In this document: positions 1 to 17,900 of the stretch, in pieces
How positions within the stretch are numbered: the stretch's first letter is position 1
How the letters are laid out: every line of letters starts with the position of its first letter
From: Diadema antillarum
Taxonomy: Eukaryota
NCBI RefSeq assembly: GCF_040938485.1
Contig: NW_027271580.1
Location: forward strand, 868,001 to 932,000
Reading direction: 5' to 3'
DNA: 64,000 nt
Program-made: the position numbers and the translations under genes
Notes under the pieces: model-generated
Told to the model about the DNA's origin: nothing
What the model saw: the letters and a program-made list of their open reading frames with translations, nothing else
Database searches by the model: none

Positions 1-3000
1 AGTATAAATGTTTTAATGTCGTTACAACTTCCACGAGGTAAGTCGAATGAGAGTGTAATTTGGTAGAAATTCAGTGTTTTTTATGGACGATTTTTTTCTA
101 AGTTTAGTTTCGTTTAGTTTCGTTTTGTTCTTTTTGGGAGGTAAGGGGGGAAATACCTAAGCTGTTGTATTGCTTCATCCAAACAAGCACGGAACACGCG
201 GAGGAATCTCGAGCCGTTGGGTGAGACATCATGTCTCAGACATGTCAAACAACGTTTATCGCATCAATGTCAAAGGGGTCACACCCATGAAGCATGCAGG
301 AACGTTGAAACCAAAACGTGTGATAGGAGAGTAGGGTATGTTTAGGAGAAGAATTCTACTGCAGGGGAGGAAAAGGAGGAGACGGAACAAAAACGAAAGC
401 TCTGTCATGGAGTGAAGGCACAGAAATATTTAGAAAAAGGAAGAGACGAAACTGGGGGCAATTATTGTGTGCGAAAGATGATGTCCCATATCTGTAGGCC
501 TATAATCAGGAGCCTGAATACTGATAATAGTGTGGTTGAAAGAAAAGGAGGGTGTGTGTGTGTGTGTATTGGGAGGAGGGGTGTTGTTTGCGTGCCGTCA
601 TGTTTAGCTGTGATATTTTGTAGCCGTGCCCCAATTACGAACGTACAGAAATCGAGAACGGTTTAGGTGTGGTTCTTCATTACATGTAGGAGAAAATGTT
701 CATGACGCTATAAATGACGTAGAATTTCAACAAAATAAAGACACTACAACAAACACAGGCCTACATATTGACCAAAAAATAAATCACAATACAAAGTGAA
801 ACCAAGCTGAAGCTGAATCTGAGACGTACAAGATCTCATCTCTGGCTACGGATGATTGTCTATAAATTCGCTTTACGGCAGCATGAAAAATTGCACGAAA
901 TACAAGTACAATTGTACAAACAAATAGACAAACAAAGCAACAATTCGTCAAACATCCCCGACAAACAACAAGATTAAATGCCAAGTAATGAGTCTGTATA
1001 TTCCCCAGTAATAGTCGTTTCCAAAATGTCAGTTGCTCAAACAATAAAAATACAGGAAAATTTTATTTGGGACGAAGGAGCCAAGTTACGAGTATCGGGT
1101 ATATTTCATCATAAATATTTCTTTACAATGATCTCGTGTGCAGGATCGTTGTCCGTCGCAAGTCACGTGACTGATATAGGGATCGAATTCCATATGTAGC
1201 TATGCGGAGGTCAAGCTTGTTATGAAGAATGTTGCAAGGATAGGAGCACTGACTAATTTCAGTTGTCAACATGCGTCGGGAAGTGATATGAACTAATGAA
1301 CTGATAAGTTCGAAAGCCGAGCTCTATCTTGGTTGAAGGCAGAGGGTTGTATCAATACAATGTAATCCCGTGTAAATGCATTTATGATATACGCCCCCTC
1401 CATCGGCCTCGTTATATTGTTGTGTGCATAGTAATCCTATGAGTGTCTGTGACATTATGAACTTCGAAGTCATGACCGGTCGTGATCATGAGCGTTTTTT
1501 GGCGCTTCCCTATAGCTGTAATGATATTAGCCCGTTTTCCATACAGCCAAGGTATTAATTGTCCCCGCGACAGTTGAACAGTACAGGAGGGCTCTAATTT
1601 TACAGCATGTAAAGTGGTATCCACCACATGTTCAAGTTGATTGTAACAAAGTAAAACTAAGCAAACAGAAAGAATTTAAGAAGTATCACTTGAATCATAG
1701 CAAAATATAGGATGATCGGTACATCGTATAGATATCAGTTTATGTTCACCTTGTTTAATTTACTGACGGCGGTATCAGTCACAGCCGTGTTTGCAAAGGT
1801 GATGGTGCCATGCCTCACATGTGTCTCATACATCTTCGCTGAATTTCTCTCAAAATAAGGGGAAAGAAAGTCGAATAATCATGTATATGGATTGAAAAAT
1901 GCGGAAATATCGATGGTACGCACCAGTGAAGTTTGAATAAAACCGGACATAACCCGTCCAAACGTTATAACGTTTAAAATTTCTGAACAGCCGTAGTAAA
2001 TGACCGGAAGACTGCAACAATTCGTGGTGTTACGTATAGGGCCTGCATGTAGAACTCTTTGGCGGTGTCACACCGTCATGGATAAAGATATAATTGTAAA
2101 TAAGATTTTATATACAGAGAGAATTCAGCATATTTTCAAAAATAATGAAAAAGTATACTTAGCGTACCTTTTTCAGGAGGCATAGAAAAATGATATTACC
2201 CTGAACATAATATGCCAGTAACAAGTGGAACGTATGTGAACATCTCGGATGATATCATGAAATTCTGTTGAATTTTCTTCATAATATATTCTTTTATATC
2301 GTTGTCAATGATCCTATGTGACATGATTACAACGACATATAAGTGATGCCACGCTGACATCACGAATTGTGGTAGTCTTCTTATCCAGCGATTGCGGTAC
2401 AGAAACTTAAAAACAAACAAACAAACAAAACACACACAAAAACAACATGTACACTTTATAACGGATTGTCCGACTTTTCTTCGAAATAATGTCACTGATA
2501 TTGTACTAATATTGCTGTATTCACTTAAAATCCACATGATATGAAGTGCATGCATATTGTTTTTATTCCCCTCTAACATAAATGCAGAAAGTATACAGTA
2601 ACCACGGTCAGCACGTCAAATTGTTCCGGAGTTATAACGATAATAGCAATTATGATAACTGGATGTGAAGTGAAAGTGGTGGTCCATATGCTGAACCACT
2701 GACAAAACAATGATTACGATTATTATTTTGAATATGTATAAACCAACGAGAAAGTTGTGAAATGAGACGGGACCATTACTGCCCGTCTAATTTGAATTTT
2801 ATAAAATGATTTTTACTGATTCACACTGAGCCATGCTTCCGGCAAAATCCGAATACATGGTTCAATCCTTGTATAGCGTTGTAGAGGTATATTGGACGCC
2901 AGATGGGGGAAAAGGTTGAATTTCATGAATTTATAGGTCCATTTTATAAAACGAATGATGCACAGGCCTATATCGTGGATCGGTGAGAATTGGATGCTCT

Positions 3001-4996
3001 CGTTTAACTTCAGAAACAGTCTAAACACTGTTGCTGCTCTCGTGGGTTTATATACATGTAGTTCCAGTTTTCACCGATCCACTCTGTTCTGTGCATCATT
3101 GATTTTGTATAATGACTACTGAAATTGTGAAACCTGTTGCATGTGAAAGTTAGGTAACTTTCACAGATCGCTCTGTCTGATTCTGATGATGAAGCTTCAA
3201 CGGAGATGAGACGAAACACCTCCCTGGTAAAGTGAAAGCTCCTCTGAATTCTCTTCCATGCGATAAAATGTATGCTCATGAATACGCGTATAATTAGATG
3301 TATTTCTTTATATAGTACTCTTTACAGATACTCCTATTTATGCTTTAATGTCAACGTTTTGGATTTGTCACGATAATTCCGTTTGTAAAATTGAAGAAAG
3401 GAAGAGAAACTGAATAAAACAAATAAATTGAATGTCGAGGTCAAAACATCAACGTCACAACTTCCGTGCTATGTCTATGCCCTAATTCTCATATTTTTTG
3501 TGTGGGCTCGCGCTGTAATCGGTTATAATACAAGCCATGGTTCAAGAGCGTACCAAAACACTTCGAACAAAGACACAAACAGGGTAGTCCAGTTGGAAGC
3601 ATCACCGTGACATAATTCAATGAGTGTGCTCATGAAGGCGGGGAAAAAAAGTGGGTGGGTGAGCATTGTCAGAGGACTGGCCTGGCGTCGTTGTGTATCA
3701 AGCTGACGGCGGACTCCAGGGGCCTCAAAAAGGTGATTCTAGCGTATGTGTTTACTGGCATAACAGCAAGCATGCACTTGGAGCTACGTGTATAGCTTTA
3801 TGATGTATCTGAAGGTGACAGACGTGACAAGTGGATTATCAATGCAGTGTTGTATGGCTCGCAAGGAATAGACATTTGCAGTATTCCAAGCGAGTTGGTC
3901 AGGCATGTGAACAACACGTGCAGGTGAAATGCATTGTGGTATAGGCCATACCGTCATGCTCGTCAGTATACAGATGGAAGGATAAGGACACCAACACAAA
4001 TTTTATTACAGCATGGCTCACGATAGTTTCGCAATGCGCTCATCTGCAGTCCTTAGGCCTACGACAAGAGTTAATTTCCCGTTTATGCCTTTCTTGCGCA
4101 TATTCATATCTTCCTATTATTTACCATACGAAAACAAATGCGAACGTTTGCCGTCAGTAGGGCCTATATAATGGATGTTTCTTTGTACATGTATAAGTGT
4201 AGGTCCTATATGCGTCGTTATGGTAAAATGTTTTTAAATACAAAATAAAATTGGTAATTCATTCTTGCAGCCTAATAAGGAAAAAGTGCGTCTCAAAGCA
4301 TCGCACAACAGATGGCTGGTAACTAGATGCATAACGTAATATCTCCATCCGAAAATGCAAGCTCACGGCATGTATAGCTTCGCGCCTCAACAAATAACTT
4401 CACATAAAAAAAAACGTGCGTGATGGCGACTGCATGCATTGCTTTACATAATGAACAGCTGCATACACTTTGTATCGAACATACATGTATTGTATATCAA
4501 TATAAGTGGTAATGATATATGCAGCTTATATTGCGCCAAATCCACTCTGTGTGCGTGGGTATGAACCACGAATTAGAATTATGATGTTCTACTATAGCTA
4601 AGCCCTACTGTATTTCTCTCTGTGTGTAATTCTGCATCCGCACACCGCGACATAACGCCGGAGAGAATGACATCAAAACTTACTCGTTCGAGGTGGCTGA
4701 CTTTCGTTCTAAACATTCATATACGCAGAAAACTTTCGATATACACTGTACACAAGAACAACCTGCTACAAGCACTTTATTTTTCCCATGAACAACAAGC
4801 AGTGCAAACGGGCCCAGCACCCCGCAGTTCAGCTTAGTTCGAAGGGGGGTTTTTCGTTCTTCATTCTCAGCCCTCGGCGCAGACGACGAAAAGTCCCCGT
4901 CGAGTGATAAAAAGTAGAATATTTCAAATGATAAGGCTTTGTGATGAAACGACGACAGATTACATGTAGAGTTGCACTGCATCATTTTGTTCTACA

Positions 4997-5189
4997 CTAC
5001 AATGAAAGAAGCCTCTGCACCGCTGTATGCTCAGCACTCTGCAGTGTGCTCTTCCGCCTCAAATAGTCCCGGTAATCCTCGAAGTTCACCTCGTCGTATC
5101 GGCGCAGGAATACTCGTTCGCCGTTGATATAGAGGCCCTCTCGTATCAAGCGGTATCTCGCCTCGTTATCTTTCACTGTGATTAGCCAT
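4997..5189 (-). CDS. Last coding exon of the RRM-like gene (WLITVKDNEARYRLIREGLYING...LLSL*)
   Basis: Good pyrimidine tract and AG acceptor at 5191-5190, in phase with the upstream donor; TAG stop at 4999-4997. Confidence 0.7.
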
Positions 5190-6713
5190 CTGTCAGAGGA
5201 ATAAATTCGGATACAACATGAACTCAGAATCACAGTATAATGATGAAGGAGAAATGATAATAATGATTATGATAATGATAGCAATAATAATGATAATGAT
5301 AATAACAATAACAATAATAATAGGTCCTATAGTGAAAATAATATCGAACGCCATTGGATCCATCGGTATTGGCATGAAATTCAGGAAAAGCAGAGATGCG
5401 TTCTAAATGACTATCGATGTGATATATCACAGGCAGTTTTGATTTCGGGGTAAGTTTTGTCAGTCTGAAGACAAGAGAAAAGTTGGCTAAATACAATTCT
5501 GGGGAGCATTTCATGAAGCTTTTTGTCAGACATTTCGTCCGACAAACTGTTAAAAGCTACTGAAATCCTTGCATCTGATTGGCTGAGAGCAATTTTGTCC
5601 GACAAAGTTGTTGGACAAAATGCTTCATGAAATGCCCCCCTGGTCCTTGTGTTGTTGGTTGTTTTTTTTTTTTCCTGGGGGGGGGGGAGGGGGGAGGATG
5701 AGAAATTTGCCAGATGGACCGAGTTTGTTGTAGGTTACGTACATACATCAGAACAAAAATCAACTTTGAAAACAAGTGTTTTCATCATGTGTGTATATTC
5801 TACAATGTGTAAACTAGAAATGAACGGGAAATCGGTTCGAGTGCTGAACAAAAAGGGGAATGGACGCATGCGACATCGTTGTACTCCCCACCACACAATC
5901 CATCACGTTTTTGTGCGCTTCCTTCCATCAACATCTCAAGTTTGCGTTCACTGACCAATGCTGAAAATTCAGTTTTCCCTGCATGCTGTTTCATTATTTT
6001 GATCAAGCTGACTTTTCTTCCTTTTTTTTCGTACAAGTTGTATAGGACCGTGGAAATGACGACGAGGAGGGTTGATAGTGAGCCTTACCTGTTCATGACA
6101 CCGGCGGCTCCCAGCACCACGTTCATATCGACAAACTGGATGTGCTGAACCTTGTCGATGGGTATCGGTTGCCGTCTCTTGATGCTCGTTAAGATGTCTT
6201 TGTGCGTGAGGTCATAGCCAGGATACGAAAAACAGAGTGTGAGTGGAGCAGGCTGTGGTGGCGCTCTGAAGAAGCGAATTTTCTTCAGAGCAAACTTGTC
6301 GGACGTAGAATGAGATCGCTGGCTATCTGCCGCGTGCATTCCGTGGTGGGACTTGGGCTTCGTTGAATGGCGACCTCTGCGTCCGTGCTTCGATACTACG
6401 GCAGAGAGCTTCGCCTGCAGCGGTTGCCTGTGTTTGCGTTTTGATCGATATTTCAAAAATTGGCAGGAGCATTTTTGTTTTCGGGTGCCTTTACTCATGC
6501 CACAGATTTTAGGGTTTCATTATTTTTGTTTTTCCCTATTTTGGGGACTGTTTTGGACAAGAATGTATATTATGCGCAATCATGTCTTTTGATTTGTATT
6601 CGCAATCAAAACATTTGATATTGCCGTACCTTAATGTCCGCTGATATGTGAAAATCAACTTGCGCAGTCTGTCAGTTACCTCAACTTGGAATATTTGACA
6701 TGAAAATGTATAC

Positions 6714-6763
<50 letters not shown>

Positions 6764-7202
6764 TCTCAGAAACTTGAAATACTATAGTCGTCTGCTGCAA
6801 ACGCGGGATAATGTTGCTTGTCAATTCATTTACTTTAGGACAATACAATTCACTTCTACTGATTACTTTAATCATCGGAGTTGCGAGGACTGCAATTCAG
6901 AAGGCTGTTAAAATAGTAGCTTAATGATAATGAGATTGTACGAGAGTACGCCCTCCAGTTTCTCACCTAAATGGGGTTTGACTTCTTTGTATCACGGGAA
7001 GCTTCACTTCAATTTCTTTTCTGGCCGTTGATTGGTTGCCTGTAAAATACTGGGACTTCGATGTGCCATTTTCGCGCGTAGAGGTCCGCTCTTCAGAGAT
7101 CATCGTCGAATACGATGCTCCTTTGTTGCCGAATGATGTCGTGCTCGACGACGTTCCGACGAACGGACTCGTGAGTCGACAACGGGAACTCGAGATCGGC
7201 AT
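4997..7202 (-). CDS. Spliced gene, ~255 aa, join(7202-6967, 6427-6089, 5189-4997); Ser/Thr/basic N-terminus plus RRM-like domain resembling non-LTR retrotransposon ORF1p
   Basis: Kozak-like CCACCATG at 7202. Donors AG|GTGAGA (6966) and AG|GTAAGG (6088); acceptor ttcctctgacAG (5190); all junctions phase 2. Product LTLCFSY..THKDILTSIK..VQHIQFV..NRWLITVKDNEARYRLIREGLYINGERVFLRRYD. AATAAA on the minus strand at 4776-4781. The acceptor at 6428 is weak, so the exon1/2 junction is less certain. Confidence 0.65.
5254..5322. repeat. Imperfect (ATA/ATG/ACA)n trinucleotide microsatellite
   Basis: Directly visible; it produces the spurious poly-Ile ORFs. Confidence 0.85.
6089..6427 (-). CDS. Middle exon of the RRM-like gene (QPLQAKL...VVLGAAGVMNR)
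   Basis: Lies within ORF 6085-6498; strong donor GTAAGG at its 3' end; the 5' boundary is uncertain. Confidence 0.65.
6717..6760. repeat. (AT)n microsatellite
   Basis: Directly visible. Confidence 0.95.
6967..7202 (-). CDS. Probable first coding exon of the RRM-like gene (MPISSSRCRL...QTPFR)
   Basis: CCACCATG start; donor AG|GTGAGA just before the ORF's TGA; candidate 5'UTR acceptors at ~7258 and ~7289. Confidence 0.5.
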
Positions 7203-11978: not shown

Positions 11979-14900
11979 ACACACACACATAGGCTTCACT
12001 TTTCATTCGTCGCCGTCGTCGACTATTTGGTTAAACAGAAAAATCCGTCTGTTCGGAGGAGTTGTATACCATTATTTTACTTTGGCGGTTCTCTGAGACA
12101 GAGAAGCCGGACGTAGTCTCCGCGGAACACATTCCCCGAAGATAACCAGACTGATTTTTCGGTGTACAATTTGGTGTATTCTCTCTAACTTTCCACAACT
12201 TTGAGCTATGACATCACATAAAGTGCCGGTCAAGTTTGAGTATTGGTCAAGTCGGACCAGATCAAAGGTCAAAAGGTCAATGAACTTACATTGAAGAACA
12301 CTATAATCACATATTGCGATATGCATGCGAGACATTGCTTGGCGTTTGCCTTTTTTAAGATTATTGCATGTTTTTCAAAAGTGACATTTGATTCTTAAAT
12401 TCTGATTCAAAACCAGTTAATTGCTGTGATGTCGCCATGAAAAATTTGCAGTTTACAACACAAAGATATATTATCCTTAAACAAAATATTTACACGGTTT
12501 ACAGTTTGCAGAATTAGGTGCGATAATTAGATGTTTTTATGCCCCCGCCACGGAATGTCGCTGAGGCATTATGTTTTCAGGTTGTCCGTCCATCCGTACG
12601 TCTTTCCATCCATCTGTCCTTCCGTCTGTAATCGATTTTGTGGACAGCGTAGCTTAAGAACCATTTGAGGTATCCACATGAAACTTGGCATATGTATGCG
12701 TGAGTGGACGGAGTTGTGCCTGTCAATTTTTTAATGCTTACGCTCAAGGTAAAAGGTCAAGGTCAAATTCTTAAAAATTTCCCTGTTCACTATATCTCTG
12801 CAATATCTGAAGGTATTCTCATGAAACTTAGCGTGTACATGTATGACCAGGTAAAGATTCTCTAGAGAAAGTTTTGGGCCGTGGGGTTAAGGTTCAAAGG
12901 TCAAGTGGAAATGCTAAAATTTCACTTGTTTTCTCCATATCTTGGAAATGGGTCACAATCACTCCATAAAATTTATTATATATGCATATATTGCCCGACT
13001 ATGATTCTCTTGAGAATTTTAGGGTCATGAGTCAAAGGTCAAGGGTCAAAGGTTAGATGAAGATTGAAAAAGCTGCTATATGATGATGAAATTACACTTT
13101 CCCCATTCCCTGAAAATTACCCAGTGCACACTCTTAATTAAATTAGGTAGGACGTATGTATATGTACTCACTGCACAATGATTATGTAATTGAAAATTTG
13201 GGCAATGGAGTCAAAGGTCAATTGAAGAATTATAAATGTCACTTTTTCCCCATATTAAAAACAAACTCAATTGTCATGAAAATTGGATATTCCGGGCCAT
13301 AATTAAATGAAGAAAAATATTGGCCAAGGGTCAAAAGTCAAGTGAAAATGCTCAAATTCCCGAATACTTGCTCAAACAAAATCTGGTTCAAGATAGAAAT
13401 CATATCAGATAGAAATGATATTAGAGTAAGGAATGGATATTGTGAAATTTATCACATCCTGTGGCAATAGGTTGTTGTTGTTTTCTTTTTTATAGTTAAG
13501 TATAGATAGACTTGGATGAAATTCTGAAAACCAACATTGTTCCTTGGTTTAAAGTGCCAGTTTATTCAAAGAGCATAATTATTAATTGACACACTTCTGT
13601 GTTGATTTTTTTTATACCTCCCTCCTAATTCTTACCACCTATCAGCTTGAACGAAACAGGCGCAACCATCACACCACTGAGTATGAATCTGAGGAGTTGT
13701 TTGTTCGTCGAGGACAAGACTTTGACATTGACGTGACATTCAACAAAGCCCCCAAGACAGAGGAGCTGGCACTGGAGCTCAGCATTCGAGGTGAGACCAG
13801 ACACCATCCATTATTATTCTCCCGGACCCTTCATCTGCTTGAAATAGCTAACTCCACAGAACATCTTTCATGCAATGCTGCCATGAGGTGTAATGGCACT
13901 AACAATGGCCTTCTCAAGACAGTATGCAATGCCAGGCTCTGTCCATTTTTGCTCAAACAAAATTGCACGGCTGACAGCCACAGCGTGCGATGGAACTTTT
14001 AACTACATGTCACGTGATGGGCAATCGACCAATCGGATAGATACATTCTTTTTAGGTGTTGTATAAAAGTTCTTTAACCTCTGATCTTTCCTTGTTTCAT
14101 TCATTTTGGAGAAATTCAGATGGAAGTGGTTAAGTAGGATTGTTTTCTGATGTATTTCATACAATTTCTGGAAACTTTGGTGATGTCCAGGTGGATGCTT
14201 TGATTATGATAAATATTTTGAAAGTCATTGATTTCTCAAGTAAATGTTGAAATTTGAACATAAATAAGCAAAATATCATGTGTACAGAGTGAATCTTCCT
14301 TTTAGAACCCAGTAAATTAACAGTAGCAATATGTAATTTTGTGGACATATGATTATGTTACATGCAGGGCTCAACATTAGGGATTGCCCGATGGCCTTGG
14401 GTTACTAAAAATTGATGTTGAGCCATCATATTTCCAAAAAGGCTAGCTCTCGGTGGTCCAATTGGGCAGCTAAAATTCAAAATGAATTTTTATAATTCCT
14501 TTTATTTGGGAATACCAACATTTCAAATTCAAAGATTTTAGAGGCCCAAATGGGCCACCAGGAAAAAAACAGTTAGTGCTGAGCCCTGTAGATGTATTAT
14601 CCATCACGTACCCTTAATATCATATCTTTGCCTTTCTCTCGTGAAGGGGCAAAAGTTTCGTCAATCAACCGTGGAACTATTGTGCGCATACCGTTCAACC
14701 GATCACACCATGTTCCCGGCGATTGGAGCATCCGGGTTGGCTCTGTGGAGGGAGCCAAGTATTCCCTGGTGGTTTCTTGTCCGGCTGACGCCATGGTTGG
14801 GAGATATGAGGTGGCCATCATCATTGTAGACAAGCTTGATGCTGGTGAGAGTGTAGATCCTTCCTCACAGAGACTTTGCTGGAGGGAGAAAAGGTCCTAT

Positions 14901-17900
14901 TTGGTGCCATCTCAGAGATAATGGCCCAAATTTTACAAAGACATTTCACAATCAAATACATGTGAGAAGTAGCCATACCTTGTAAATGGTCTGTGAAAAG
15001 AGTTGCTGGACATAATTGCGTCGGGGCAGCAAATTTCAAACTGCATTTCCCAACAAAATTGAGATATAAAATGCCAAAAGCGTGCTATCCTGTTGCTGTG
15101 GTAGCAGTAGTGCACATTGATACAGTTGTGCAATTTTGTTGAATTCAATTTGCTAGTTACGAGACAAGGGTTAAAGAATATAATGTATTAGAGTCATTGT
15201 ATTAATTTAATGCAAAAGTAATTAAGATATTCAAACCTTTTTTAAACAAAACTACTAAAACTGTAAATGAAAAACTGAGGTTTTACTGTGCATATTGATC
15301 ATACCCAAGGTAATTGGTAGCATGGATCAGTGCCTTTGTGCAGATCATCCTTGAACATTCCTTTAGGCATTGGGGCTCTTTATGAGAGCAGGCATACCAC
15401 TATGAAACAAATTAGATGCACAGGATGTGATGAGATGCTCAACGTTGCGAAAACGATGATTTGATTGTGATTAAAACTGGCAGCAGCTGCATGCAGTACT
15501 GAAACAATGTTGGACCTCCTTATCTTCCCCAGAGCCAAGATTTTTCAAGCAATCGCCGCTCATCTACGTTGTGTTCAATCCATGGTGTGCCGAAGACACC
15601 GTGTTCATGAATGGGGAGGATGAGAAGAAGGAGTATGTGCTGAATGAGAGCGGGTTTGTGTTTACTGGGACGGCCAGGCAGGGCCAGCAGTGGGCTCGTC
15701 CATGGATCTTTGGTCAGTTTGAGGAATCGGTCATCAAAGTCATCTTTGACCTCCTCGAGAAGTAGGTGTTTACTGTAAACACGTTGTGGTTGTTGTTTAG
15801 GGAGGGTCAATGTGTAACACCTTGTGAATTCTGTAGCTCCTGTATTCCAAGTAGGCATATAAACACAAACAAATGTATGTTTTTGTGAATTTAAGATCAA
15901 TTTATCACAAGTTCTTGCAGTGAGAGGTAGAAATGTTTCATGAAAAAACACTTCTTTACTTAATTATGACAAGATTATTAGATGTGTCTCCAATTGTCTA
16001 TAAAATATTTTTCCTTTTCTTGTAGCTGTGAGAGAGTATTTGCCATTCACTTGATGAGTCATCATTAGGTTATCTGGTATCTTGAATTAAGTTGTGTGAT
16101 ATGTGTACAATTTCTCAACTTAATCCTGGCTCTGCATTTTCAGACCCATTATAAAAATGTGCACTAAAACCACAAATTTCATCAATTCTTTAACCCTAAC
16201 TAGGCCGGGCTATTTAGGTAGTTGATAGAGCCCGGGGGGGGAGGGGGGGGGGGGGGCCTCCCAGGCCCCCCCCCTCCAGATCTCGGCCGTCGACCGCGCG
16301 ATCGCGACGAAAATTGGCACACACATTGCCTATGATGTAATCTAAAATACCATGGAGCCATTTTTTTCAAAAAATCATCATTTATGCTAAATTATGCTAA
16401 TTTATGCATGATGATGCATAAAATTGGACTATTTGGTATAAATCACAAAATAAAGCTCAAAACAGGCACATTTTTTGTGTAAATATTCTTTTTAGTGTCC
16501 TTAGCAAATGTTATAAAAAAATTGTGATATCAGAAAAAATTCTTAAGTATTTTATTGTTTTTTGGAATTTCTTATGTATTTCTTTGTTTTTTCGACTTTA
16601 TGTTTTTCATTGTTTTTTCGATGAAATTTGTCCGCGACATCGCTCCGAACAAGAAAATATGTTATTCATTGATTTTAATCAATAAAACACCAAAATAATC
16701 ATGCTTTTATGAAATTTGCCTGTAAGCACAGTTTGCATTGAAATTGTACACGAATTAACGTTTTTGAGTAATTTTTGGTCTGACATGCATGTACATATTT
16801 ATGCGTAACTTCGGAACCACGCGCCTGGGCATCACAAATTTGGTGTCAAAAGATGCAGGAGACTCGAAAGAAAGAAGTCATGAAACGTCGCGGCGATAGC
16901 TTTTTGCGATTGCGATACATCGCGCGGAACGTCGAGGGGGGGGCCTCTGAGGCCCCCCCCCGGCCTAGTAAGGGTTAAGGGTTTCTTGTACTCAAGGATA
17001 CCAGTGTTGTTATTTTCATTGTGCAAAGTCTCCTGGATTTACCCAGAAGTTAGTCAGGTTGCAGAGTTGTTGAATGATTGGCAGGCTTTGGTTACTATTA
17101 CCCTTGTCGTTTCCTTTAAGTCTGGGAAATTAGTGGATTTGATGTAAGGAGTCGCAGCTCTTCTACAGAATTCTTTATTTGTTTTTCACCCACTACATCT
17201 GCTATACTAGATATGAAATTGTGAAATTCTTCTGAGAAATTACAGGAAAGAATGTATGGGTTCTATTTTGTATTTCTAAGTTGCTTCGATTCCGACAGAG
17301 TATGATATTATTAAATTGTCATTGCCCTTGTGTATTTGCTGTTTTTGTGCCTAAGGCACACTCGCGATGGAGCCAGAAGGGACCCAGTGGTTGTGTCCAG
17401 GAAGTTCACCGGTCTCATAAACTACATGCCGGTGTGGGGCCGGGAGGAGACCAAGACTGGAATCCTTGTGGGAAACTGGAGCGGAGAATATGACGATGGT
17501 GAGAGCAGGGATGTGTTACATAGATCGAGTGGCAACTCTTCATCATTCATGCAAACACATGCTTGGGTTCAAAGCGTTGACAATAGGATGTCTAACATTC
17601 CACTACACTACACATTACTACAGTAATGCTTTGCACTGCGTTAGTTGCAAGACGAAGTTTGGAGACAACGAGTGCATTTCACTTTTCATCGAATTACGAG
17701 CTATATTTCACCGTAAAATCTGAAGTGAAATGCTCGAATTTATTGAGAAGAGTTTTAGGAAAGAATTCGATATTATAAACATATATTTCTATGTCGCCAA
17801 TCGATATGAAATGAAAATTAGGTCCTCTTAAAAACCTAAAATTTTTCTATGATGTGCACATTTGCTCATGTTATTTTTTAATCTTTCAATCTGGGATATT

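Follow-up and report, generated by a model that had tools for sequence, protein, structure and literature searches.

A probable C19orf81/DUF4732 orthologue with a predicted RRM-like domain in the sea urchin Diadema antillarum

The locus and its gene model

The window, meaning the whole stretch of 64,000 nucleotides of Diadema antillarum DNA that was analysed, carries on its minus strand a gene of three exons. Their coding parts of 236, 339 and 193 nt are joined to 768 nt, which corresponds to 255 codons and a stop. The start codon ATG is located at 7202-7200 in the context CCACCATGC, with an A at position -3. Exon 1 ends at the donor TTAG/GTGAGA (6967/6966) and is joined to the acceptor ACAG/G (6428/6427), and exon 2 ends at the donor ACAG/GTAAGG (6089/6088) and is joined to the acceptor GACAG/A (5190/5189). 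A preliminary description made from the letters of this DNA had proposed these exons, a Kozak start and a downstream AATAAA, and all of them were recovered at the same coordinates. The features of the gene and its neighbour are as follows.

13586-13999 and 14592-14918, plus strand: transglutaminase exons (Transglut_N, E 5e-14 and 3e-7)
6967..7202, minus strand: coding exon 1, residues 1-78 and two bases of codon 79
6428..6966, minus strand: intron 1, 539 nt, GT..AG, phase 2
6089..6427, minus strand: coding exon 2, last base of codon 79, residues 80-191 and two bases of codon 192
5190..6088, minus strand: intron 2, 899 nt, GT..AG, phase 2, splitting the Arg codon of the invariant N-R-W
5501..5640, no strand assigned: MITE-like insertion of 140 nt in intron 2, with 32-nt terminal inverted repeats that are 88% complementary
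4997..5189, minus strand: coding exon 3, last base of codon 192, residues 193-255 and the stop codon TAG at 4999-4997
4776..4781, minus strand: AATAAA hexamer, candidate poly(A) signal, 216 nt past the stop codon

Exon 1 encodes a disordered, Ser/Thr-rich basic arm with a conserved MPISSSRxRLT N-terminus and a (K/R)(V/L)KLPxI motif, and the N-terminal motif is common to the proteins of Lytechinus, Asterias, Anneissia and Apostichopus. Exon 2 contains the end of the basic arm, a Pro-rich lead-in (KIRFFxxPPxPxPL), and beta1-alpha1-beta2 with the conserved loop of the Pfam domain DUF4732, the domain part being about 6089-6288. The remainder of the domain, beta3-alpha2-beta4-beta5 and two C-terminal helices, is encoded by exon 3. 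Intron 1 holds an (AT)n microsatellite at about 6717-6762 and intron 2 an ATT/ATC-rich low-complexity tract at about 5235-5320. The site of the MITE-like element is empty in a second copy of the gene on contig C682 and in Diadema setosum, and the insertion plays no part in the function of the gene. A relative of this element with 88% identity is located elsewhere in D. setosum sequence (L010:6936-7080).

The transglutaminase gene is positioned head-to-head (divergently) with the DUF4732 gene, the arrangement in D. setosum is identical, and the flanks of the two species run collinearly for 14 kb or more. The D. setosum annotation makes the transglutaminase CDS begin in a CATG palindrome in which the start codon of the DUF4732 gene also lies, apparently an oddity of the modelling. 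D. setosum has about 1.27 kb extra (L010:10076-11345) right after the stop codon in comparison with window position 4993/4994, and thus the 3' UTRs of the two Diadema species differ by an insertion or deletion. Downstream of the DUF4732 gene, the window at 1174-4035 shows blocks 82-89% identical to D. setosum, an identity above that of intron 1 and the immediate gene flanks and about level with intron 2. Two ORFs tested in this interval gave no Pfam match, and the blocks are possibly a repeat present in both species or else non-coding DNA that has been conserved.

Family assignment, age and constraint of the gene

The 255-amino-acid product is 100% identical to the D. antillarum RefSeq protein XP_071503462.1/XP_071503654.1 (P0003), which is named "uncharacterized protein". 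This entry was found by an exhaustive HMMER search with exon 2, which maps to its residues 80-191, and tblastn of the entry against the window gives back all three exons, an agreement well outside what chance would produce. Two other matches of the search (P0014 and P0022) were discarded as spurious, one being a low-complexity protein without Pfam family, whose match was confined to a low-complexity stretch of the query, and the other a plant NB-ARC protein. Exon 2 matches Pfam DUF4732 (PF15876) at profile positions 43-110 (E 4.5e-6, 27.3 bits), and exon 3 continues collinearly at positions 113-157 (E 1.2e-5, 25.9 bits). The whole domain, residues 118-255 of the RefSeq protein, reaches 71.7 bits against a cut-off of 27 (E 1e-19) and covers profile positions 43-157 of 159. 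These matches came from protein-level searches; whole-genome Pfam searches for DUF4732 and RBD_ZCCHC3_2nd returned nothing at genome-scale E-values.

A protein of D. setosum, also 255 amino acids long, is 95% identical to the D. antillarum product. The name "putative uncharacterized protein C19orf81 homolog" is borne by relatives from Strongylocentrotus purpuratus, Anneissia japonica, Ptychodera flava and a frog, a sturgeon relative is called "putative uncharacterized protein C19orf81", and proteins of sea stars, a sea cucumber, Ciona, Capitella and Helobdella contain DUF4732 without bearing the C19orf81 name. The mouse orthologue of C19orf81 is known as 1700008O03Rik (PMC7822523), and human C19orf81 enters the present comparison through papers alone and not by sequence. 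In alignments of 28-31 family members, the invariant residues N181, R192, W193, L206 and D224 and the nearly invariant F132, P136, P140, H154, Q176, F177, N191 and Y231 are all present in the D. antillarum protein. One locus with a probable haplotig, a shared intron within N-R-W, and relatives named C19orf81 homolog were found together, and on sequence grounds the gene is best regarded as the D. antillarum orthologue of the animal family C19orf81/DUF4732. Public databases already list both the gene and the family to which it is assigned, and the gene is an ordinary conserved, uncharacterised one. The preliminary description had suggested an uncharacterised protein, and this is borne out, as no DUF4732 member has a known function.

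The structure of the gene appears to be old. Intron 2 lies in the Arg codon of N-R-W at the same position in Diadema, Lytechinus, Asterias and Ptychodera, and the exon boundaries of the frog and Ciona genes coincide with it, so that this phase-2 intron spans three echinoderm classes, a hemichordate, Ciona and a frog; in Capitella it is missing. Intron 1, located just ahead of the basic tract, is also present in Lytechinus, Asterias and Ptychodera. That deuterostomes share an intron placed midway through the fold implies that their common ancestor already possessed this as an ordinary host gene.

Within the 1.75-Gb assembly the exons occur at two places only, the window itself (contig C692) and contig C682, where a second whole-gene copy was located.

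G000:C682:93966-96073 (L002, L004): second whole-gene copy, to which RefSeq assigns the same protein as the copy in the window

The two copies differ by nine substitutions in 768 coding bases, all nine of them synonymous and none non-synonymous, while their introns show 1.5-5% mismatches together with indels, intron 2 of the C682 copy being about 100 nt shorter. The second copy is probably a haplotig left uncollapsed, the urchin being highly heterozygous, and the gene is effectively single-copy, with no TE-like copy number. Selection was estimated by the Nei-Gojobori method against the D. setosum orthologue (L010) with exon-by-exon counts summed. The resulting dN/dS is 0.17 for the whole coding sequence, 0.04 for the domain (residues 118-255) and 0.27 for the N-terminal arm. 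Exons are 93-96% identical to those of D. setosum and introns 76-88% (intron 1, 75.6%), and exon 3 has seven differences in total, of which 1.5 are counted as non-synonymous. A Logan contig of 1027 nt from another urchin (L006, run SRR31798691) contains an orthologous frame of 259 codons with UTR-like flanks and is continuous across both junctions. Since the genomic gene of Lytechinus is interrupted at the same junctions by introns of 12.3 and 1.2 kb, this contig looks like a spliced mRNA. These comparisons point to a host gene that is genuine, spliced and kept under purifying selection, and the host-gene status first proposed for it is upheld by its introns, its lack of TE-like copy number, its constraint, and orthologues with the same exon structure. 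The orthologue search and dN/dS estimate that had been recommended as checks gave an intron conserved across deuterostomes and the value of 0.17.

Predicted fold of the DUF4732 domain

Residues 118-255 were modelled by AlphaFold2 with 28 homologues, giving a mean pLDDT of 84.7 and a pTM of 0.76. The elements of the model in domain numbering are E25-30, H37-47, E55-61, E74-80, H83-92, E94-96, E99-101, H106-125 and H127-137, and the core in full-length numbering is E142-146, H154-164, E172-178, E192-197, H200-209, E211-213 and E216-218. The predicted architecture is therefore beta-alpha-beta-beta-alpha-beta-beta followed by a C-terminal two-helix hairpin. The Pro-rich lead-in is conserved and modelled with high confidence, without regular structure. 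In the full-length model, residues 1-124 are disordered and contain no helix, and pLDDT is below 50 for most of them. The pI of the whole protein is 10.4 and that of the Ser/Thr-rich arm 11.2, while the charge of the domain varies across the family (pI 5.8-9.9). The most conserved parts are IQFxDxN...G, which forms beta2 and the next loop, N-R-W, and YDDV..E.Y at the start of helix 3.

A Foldseek search of the PDB returned RRMs almost exclusively, with E-values from 3e-3. By sequence, a profile search of the family alignment against all PDB sequences gave zero matches at E<=10, and a feature search of the ESM Atlas excluding DUF4732 gave sub-threshold hypothetical clusters alone, with scores up to 0.88. 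The beta-alpha-beta-beta-alpha-beta pattern that had been read from the letters in the preliminary description agrees strand by strand with the AlphaFold2 secondary structure, and RRMs fill the fold-search lists. The models thus support an RRM-like, ferredoxin-like fold for the C-terminal ~110 amino acids, the compact domain being about residues 125-255.

Canonical RRMs are recognized by two consensus motifs, RNP1 on beta3 ([RK]-G-[FY]-[GA]-[FY]-[ILV]-x-[FY]) and RNP2 on beta1 ([ILV]-[FY]-[ILV]-x-N-L). Neither consensus is present in the D. antillarum domain, where beta1 reads TLCFSY and beta3 NRWLITVK, and none of the 28 family members gave an HMM match to RRM_1 (PF00076) at E<=10. The DUF4732 domain resembles the RRM in fold at most and is not a member of the RRM sequence family. 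We also considered the xRRM, exemplified by LARP7 and p65, as the F-x-D on beta2, the Arg on beta3 and a helix alpha3 over the sheet might recall it; this reading was dropped, as matches to p65 and La were not preferred.

Competing explanations, proposed function and known systems

The preliminary description had taken the gene for a host gene derived from or related to retrotransposon ORF1p. For a direct comparison, ZCCHC3-type ORFs were located in the same genome and in echinoderm relatives and aligned into a profile. The following belong to D. antillarum.

G000:C208:960581-968253 and G000:C948:1669376-1712613: ZCCHC3-type ORFs in pairs on two contigs (L011-L014; also L017)

These controls are intact ORFs of 216-440 amino acids with RBD_ZCCHC3_1st/2nd and CCHC knuckles, one of them with 92% identity to a D. 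antillarum protein in RefSeq, and they are the genuine ORF1p-like genes of the genome. The genuine ZCCHC3-type genes (VTVLHVPFE..., LSLGGRECWVRYEGQPRTCLKC) look quite unlike the DUF4732 gene. The hhalign comparison of the two family alignments gave a probability of 3.7% and an out-of-register match of 34 columns, and no match to Transposase_22, RBD_ZCCHC3 or zf-CCHC was found at E<=10 among 28 family members. The L1 ORF1p RRM and ZCCHC3-type domains are among the fold-search matches without preference over other RRMs; the structural similarity to the ORF1p RRM is no better than that to dozens of ordinary RRMs, and even to ACT domains. A zinc knuckle is absent, as had been noted from the letters, there being only two Cys in all 255 residues, and a coiled coil is absent too, the N-terminal region being disordered in the AlphaFold2 model. 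In the exhaustive exon-2 search, which covered 1.84 billion proteins, no TE-linked relative came up, the two odd matches being a plant NLR and a low-complexity protein. Of the original proposal, the host gene and the RRM-like fold hold, and the relation to ORF1p does not in view of the Pfam and hhalign results; the orthology found is to a non-TE family, though not to a functionally characterised one. ORF1p ancestry is unsupported and DUF4732 has no detectable kinship to ORF1p or ZCCHC3. A kinship may exist at the trivial level at which every RRM-like fold is perhaps a distant relative of every other.

As a whole, the locus is in our judgement quite probably a C19orf81/DUF4732 host gene consisting of a basic arm and a non-canonical RRM-type domain, for which a role as an RNA- or RNP-binding adaptor is proposed. 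Against this stands the idea of a domesticated L1/Tx1-type ORF1p that, like ZCCHC3, acts on retroelement RNA, having lost its zinc knuckles and gained introns. We consider it very unlikely, given the missing profile matches and the hhalign result, a fold no closer to ORF1p than to ordinary RRMs and ACT domains, a disordered N-terminus in place of a coiled coil, a single locus with its probable haplotig, and the lack of TE-linked relatives. The in-domain intron conserved across deuterostomes further means that any domestication would be older than deuterostomes and would have left no trace. An anti-retroelement role is pure speculation. The bare RefSeq name "uncharacterized protein" could hint at an annotation artefact or a decaying pseudogene instead of an expressed protein-coding gene; this is hardly credible in the face of open frames, splice sites that are canonical and conserved, a dN/dS of 0.04 in the domain, the exclusively synonymous differences between the two copies, orthologues with the same exon structure across phyla, and the spliced transcript-like contig of a related urchin.

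The more balanced question is what the domain of the C19orf81/DUF4732 protein binds. The protein would be a small RNA- or RNP-binding adaptor, in which specificity comes from the non-canonical RRM fold through the QF-x-D-x-N...G loop between beta2 and beta3 and the N-R-W at the start of beta3, and the basic arm may add non-specific nucleic-acid affinity or localisation. We favour this reading because most structural neighbours bind RNA, the best ones non-canonically, and because the echinoderm proteins are very basic; direct binding of RNA or RNP by the domain nevertheless has, by analogy, a little less than an even chance. In the other reading the same C19orf81/DUF4732 gene encodes a pseudo-RRM for protein-protein contacts, a scaffold or adaptor without direct RNA binding, and this we hold to be a serious though lesser possibility, in line with the missing RNP motifs, a beta-sheet that is possibly occluded, and a domain charge that is not conserved. 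Models for such a pseudo-RRM are the UHM domains, the CFIm68 RRM with CFIm25, and p14 with SF3b155.

Returning to the RNA- or RNP-binding adaptor, its action would probably be in early germ-line cells, judging from the expression of the human orthologue. Human C19ORF81 is among the scRNA-seq markers of undifferentiated spermatogonia, beside PIWIL4, NANOS2/3 and C19ORF84 (PMC13003925), and has been used in immunostaining of testis (PMC6274646). By analogy with this human orthologue, a germ-line action is suggested for the urchin protein. We found no literature on DUF4732 and none that addresses the function of C19orf81. A bolder version would make DUF4732/C19orf81 an ancient non-canonical RRM-fold RNA-binding protein of germ-line stem or precursor cells, acting in a PIWI/NANOS-type post-transcriptional or transposon-control programme; we regard this as improbable. 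It would date the family at least to the protostome-deuterostome ancestor, and if true, RNA targets could be sought in a tractable system, the sea-urchin orthologue and its long basic arm.

What was a possible domesticated retrotransposon protein becomes an ordinary catalogued orthologue of an uncharacterised conserved gene. The gains are modest. DUF4732 is given a structural description, a non-canonical RRM-type fold that includes a conserved loop and a helical hairpin, which points to binding assays, and its family is seen to possess a deuterostome-conserved intron within the fold; neither would surprise specialists. The spermatogonial expression of the human member makes DUF4732 a reasonable candidate for the study of germ-line RNA biology.

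Compared with known systems, the protein differs from the L1 ORF1p RRM (PDB 2w7a, 2ldy) in having neither coiled coil nor C-terminal domain, and from the ZCCHC3/Tx1-type ORF1p (PF23057, PF23058) in lacking a CCHC knuckle and profile similarity (the 3.7% of hhalign). Unlike L1/Tx1 ORF1p elements, the gene has no adjacent ORF2 and no multicopy distribution. From canonical and atypical RRMs, such as the RNA-binding domain of DbpA/YxiN, the CFIm68 RRM and Mip6 RRM3, it is set apart by the lack of RRM_1 signal and of RNP1/RNP2, and by its own long conserved beta2-beta3 loop, conserved Pro-rich lead-in and two-helix C-terminal hairpin. With the C19orf81/DUF4732 family it has in common the invariant motifs PLTxCF, LTH, IQFxDxN, NRW and YDDV..E.Y, and with the frog and Ciona members the intron inside N-R-W, after the first two bases of the Arg codon. 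Its predicted shape recurs in the chordate DUF4732 cluster of the ESM Atlas (TM 0.80). Within this family, the echinoderm and hemichordate members are distinguished from those of vertebrates and annelids by a longer, very basic N-terminal arm with its own motifs, MPISSSRxRLT and KLPxI.
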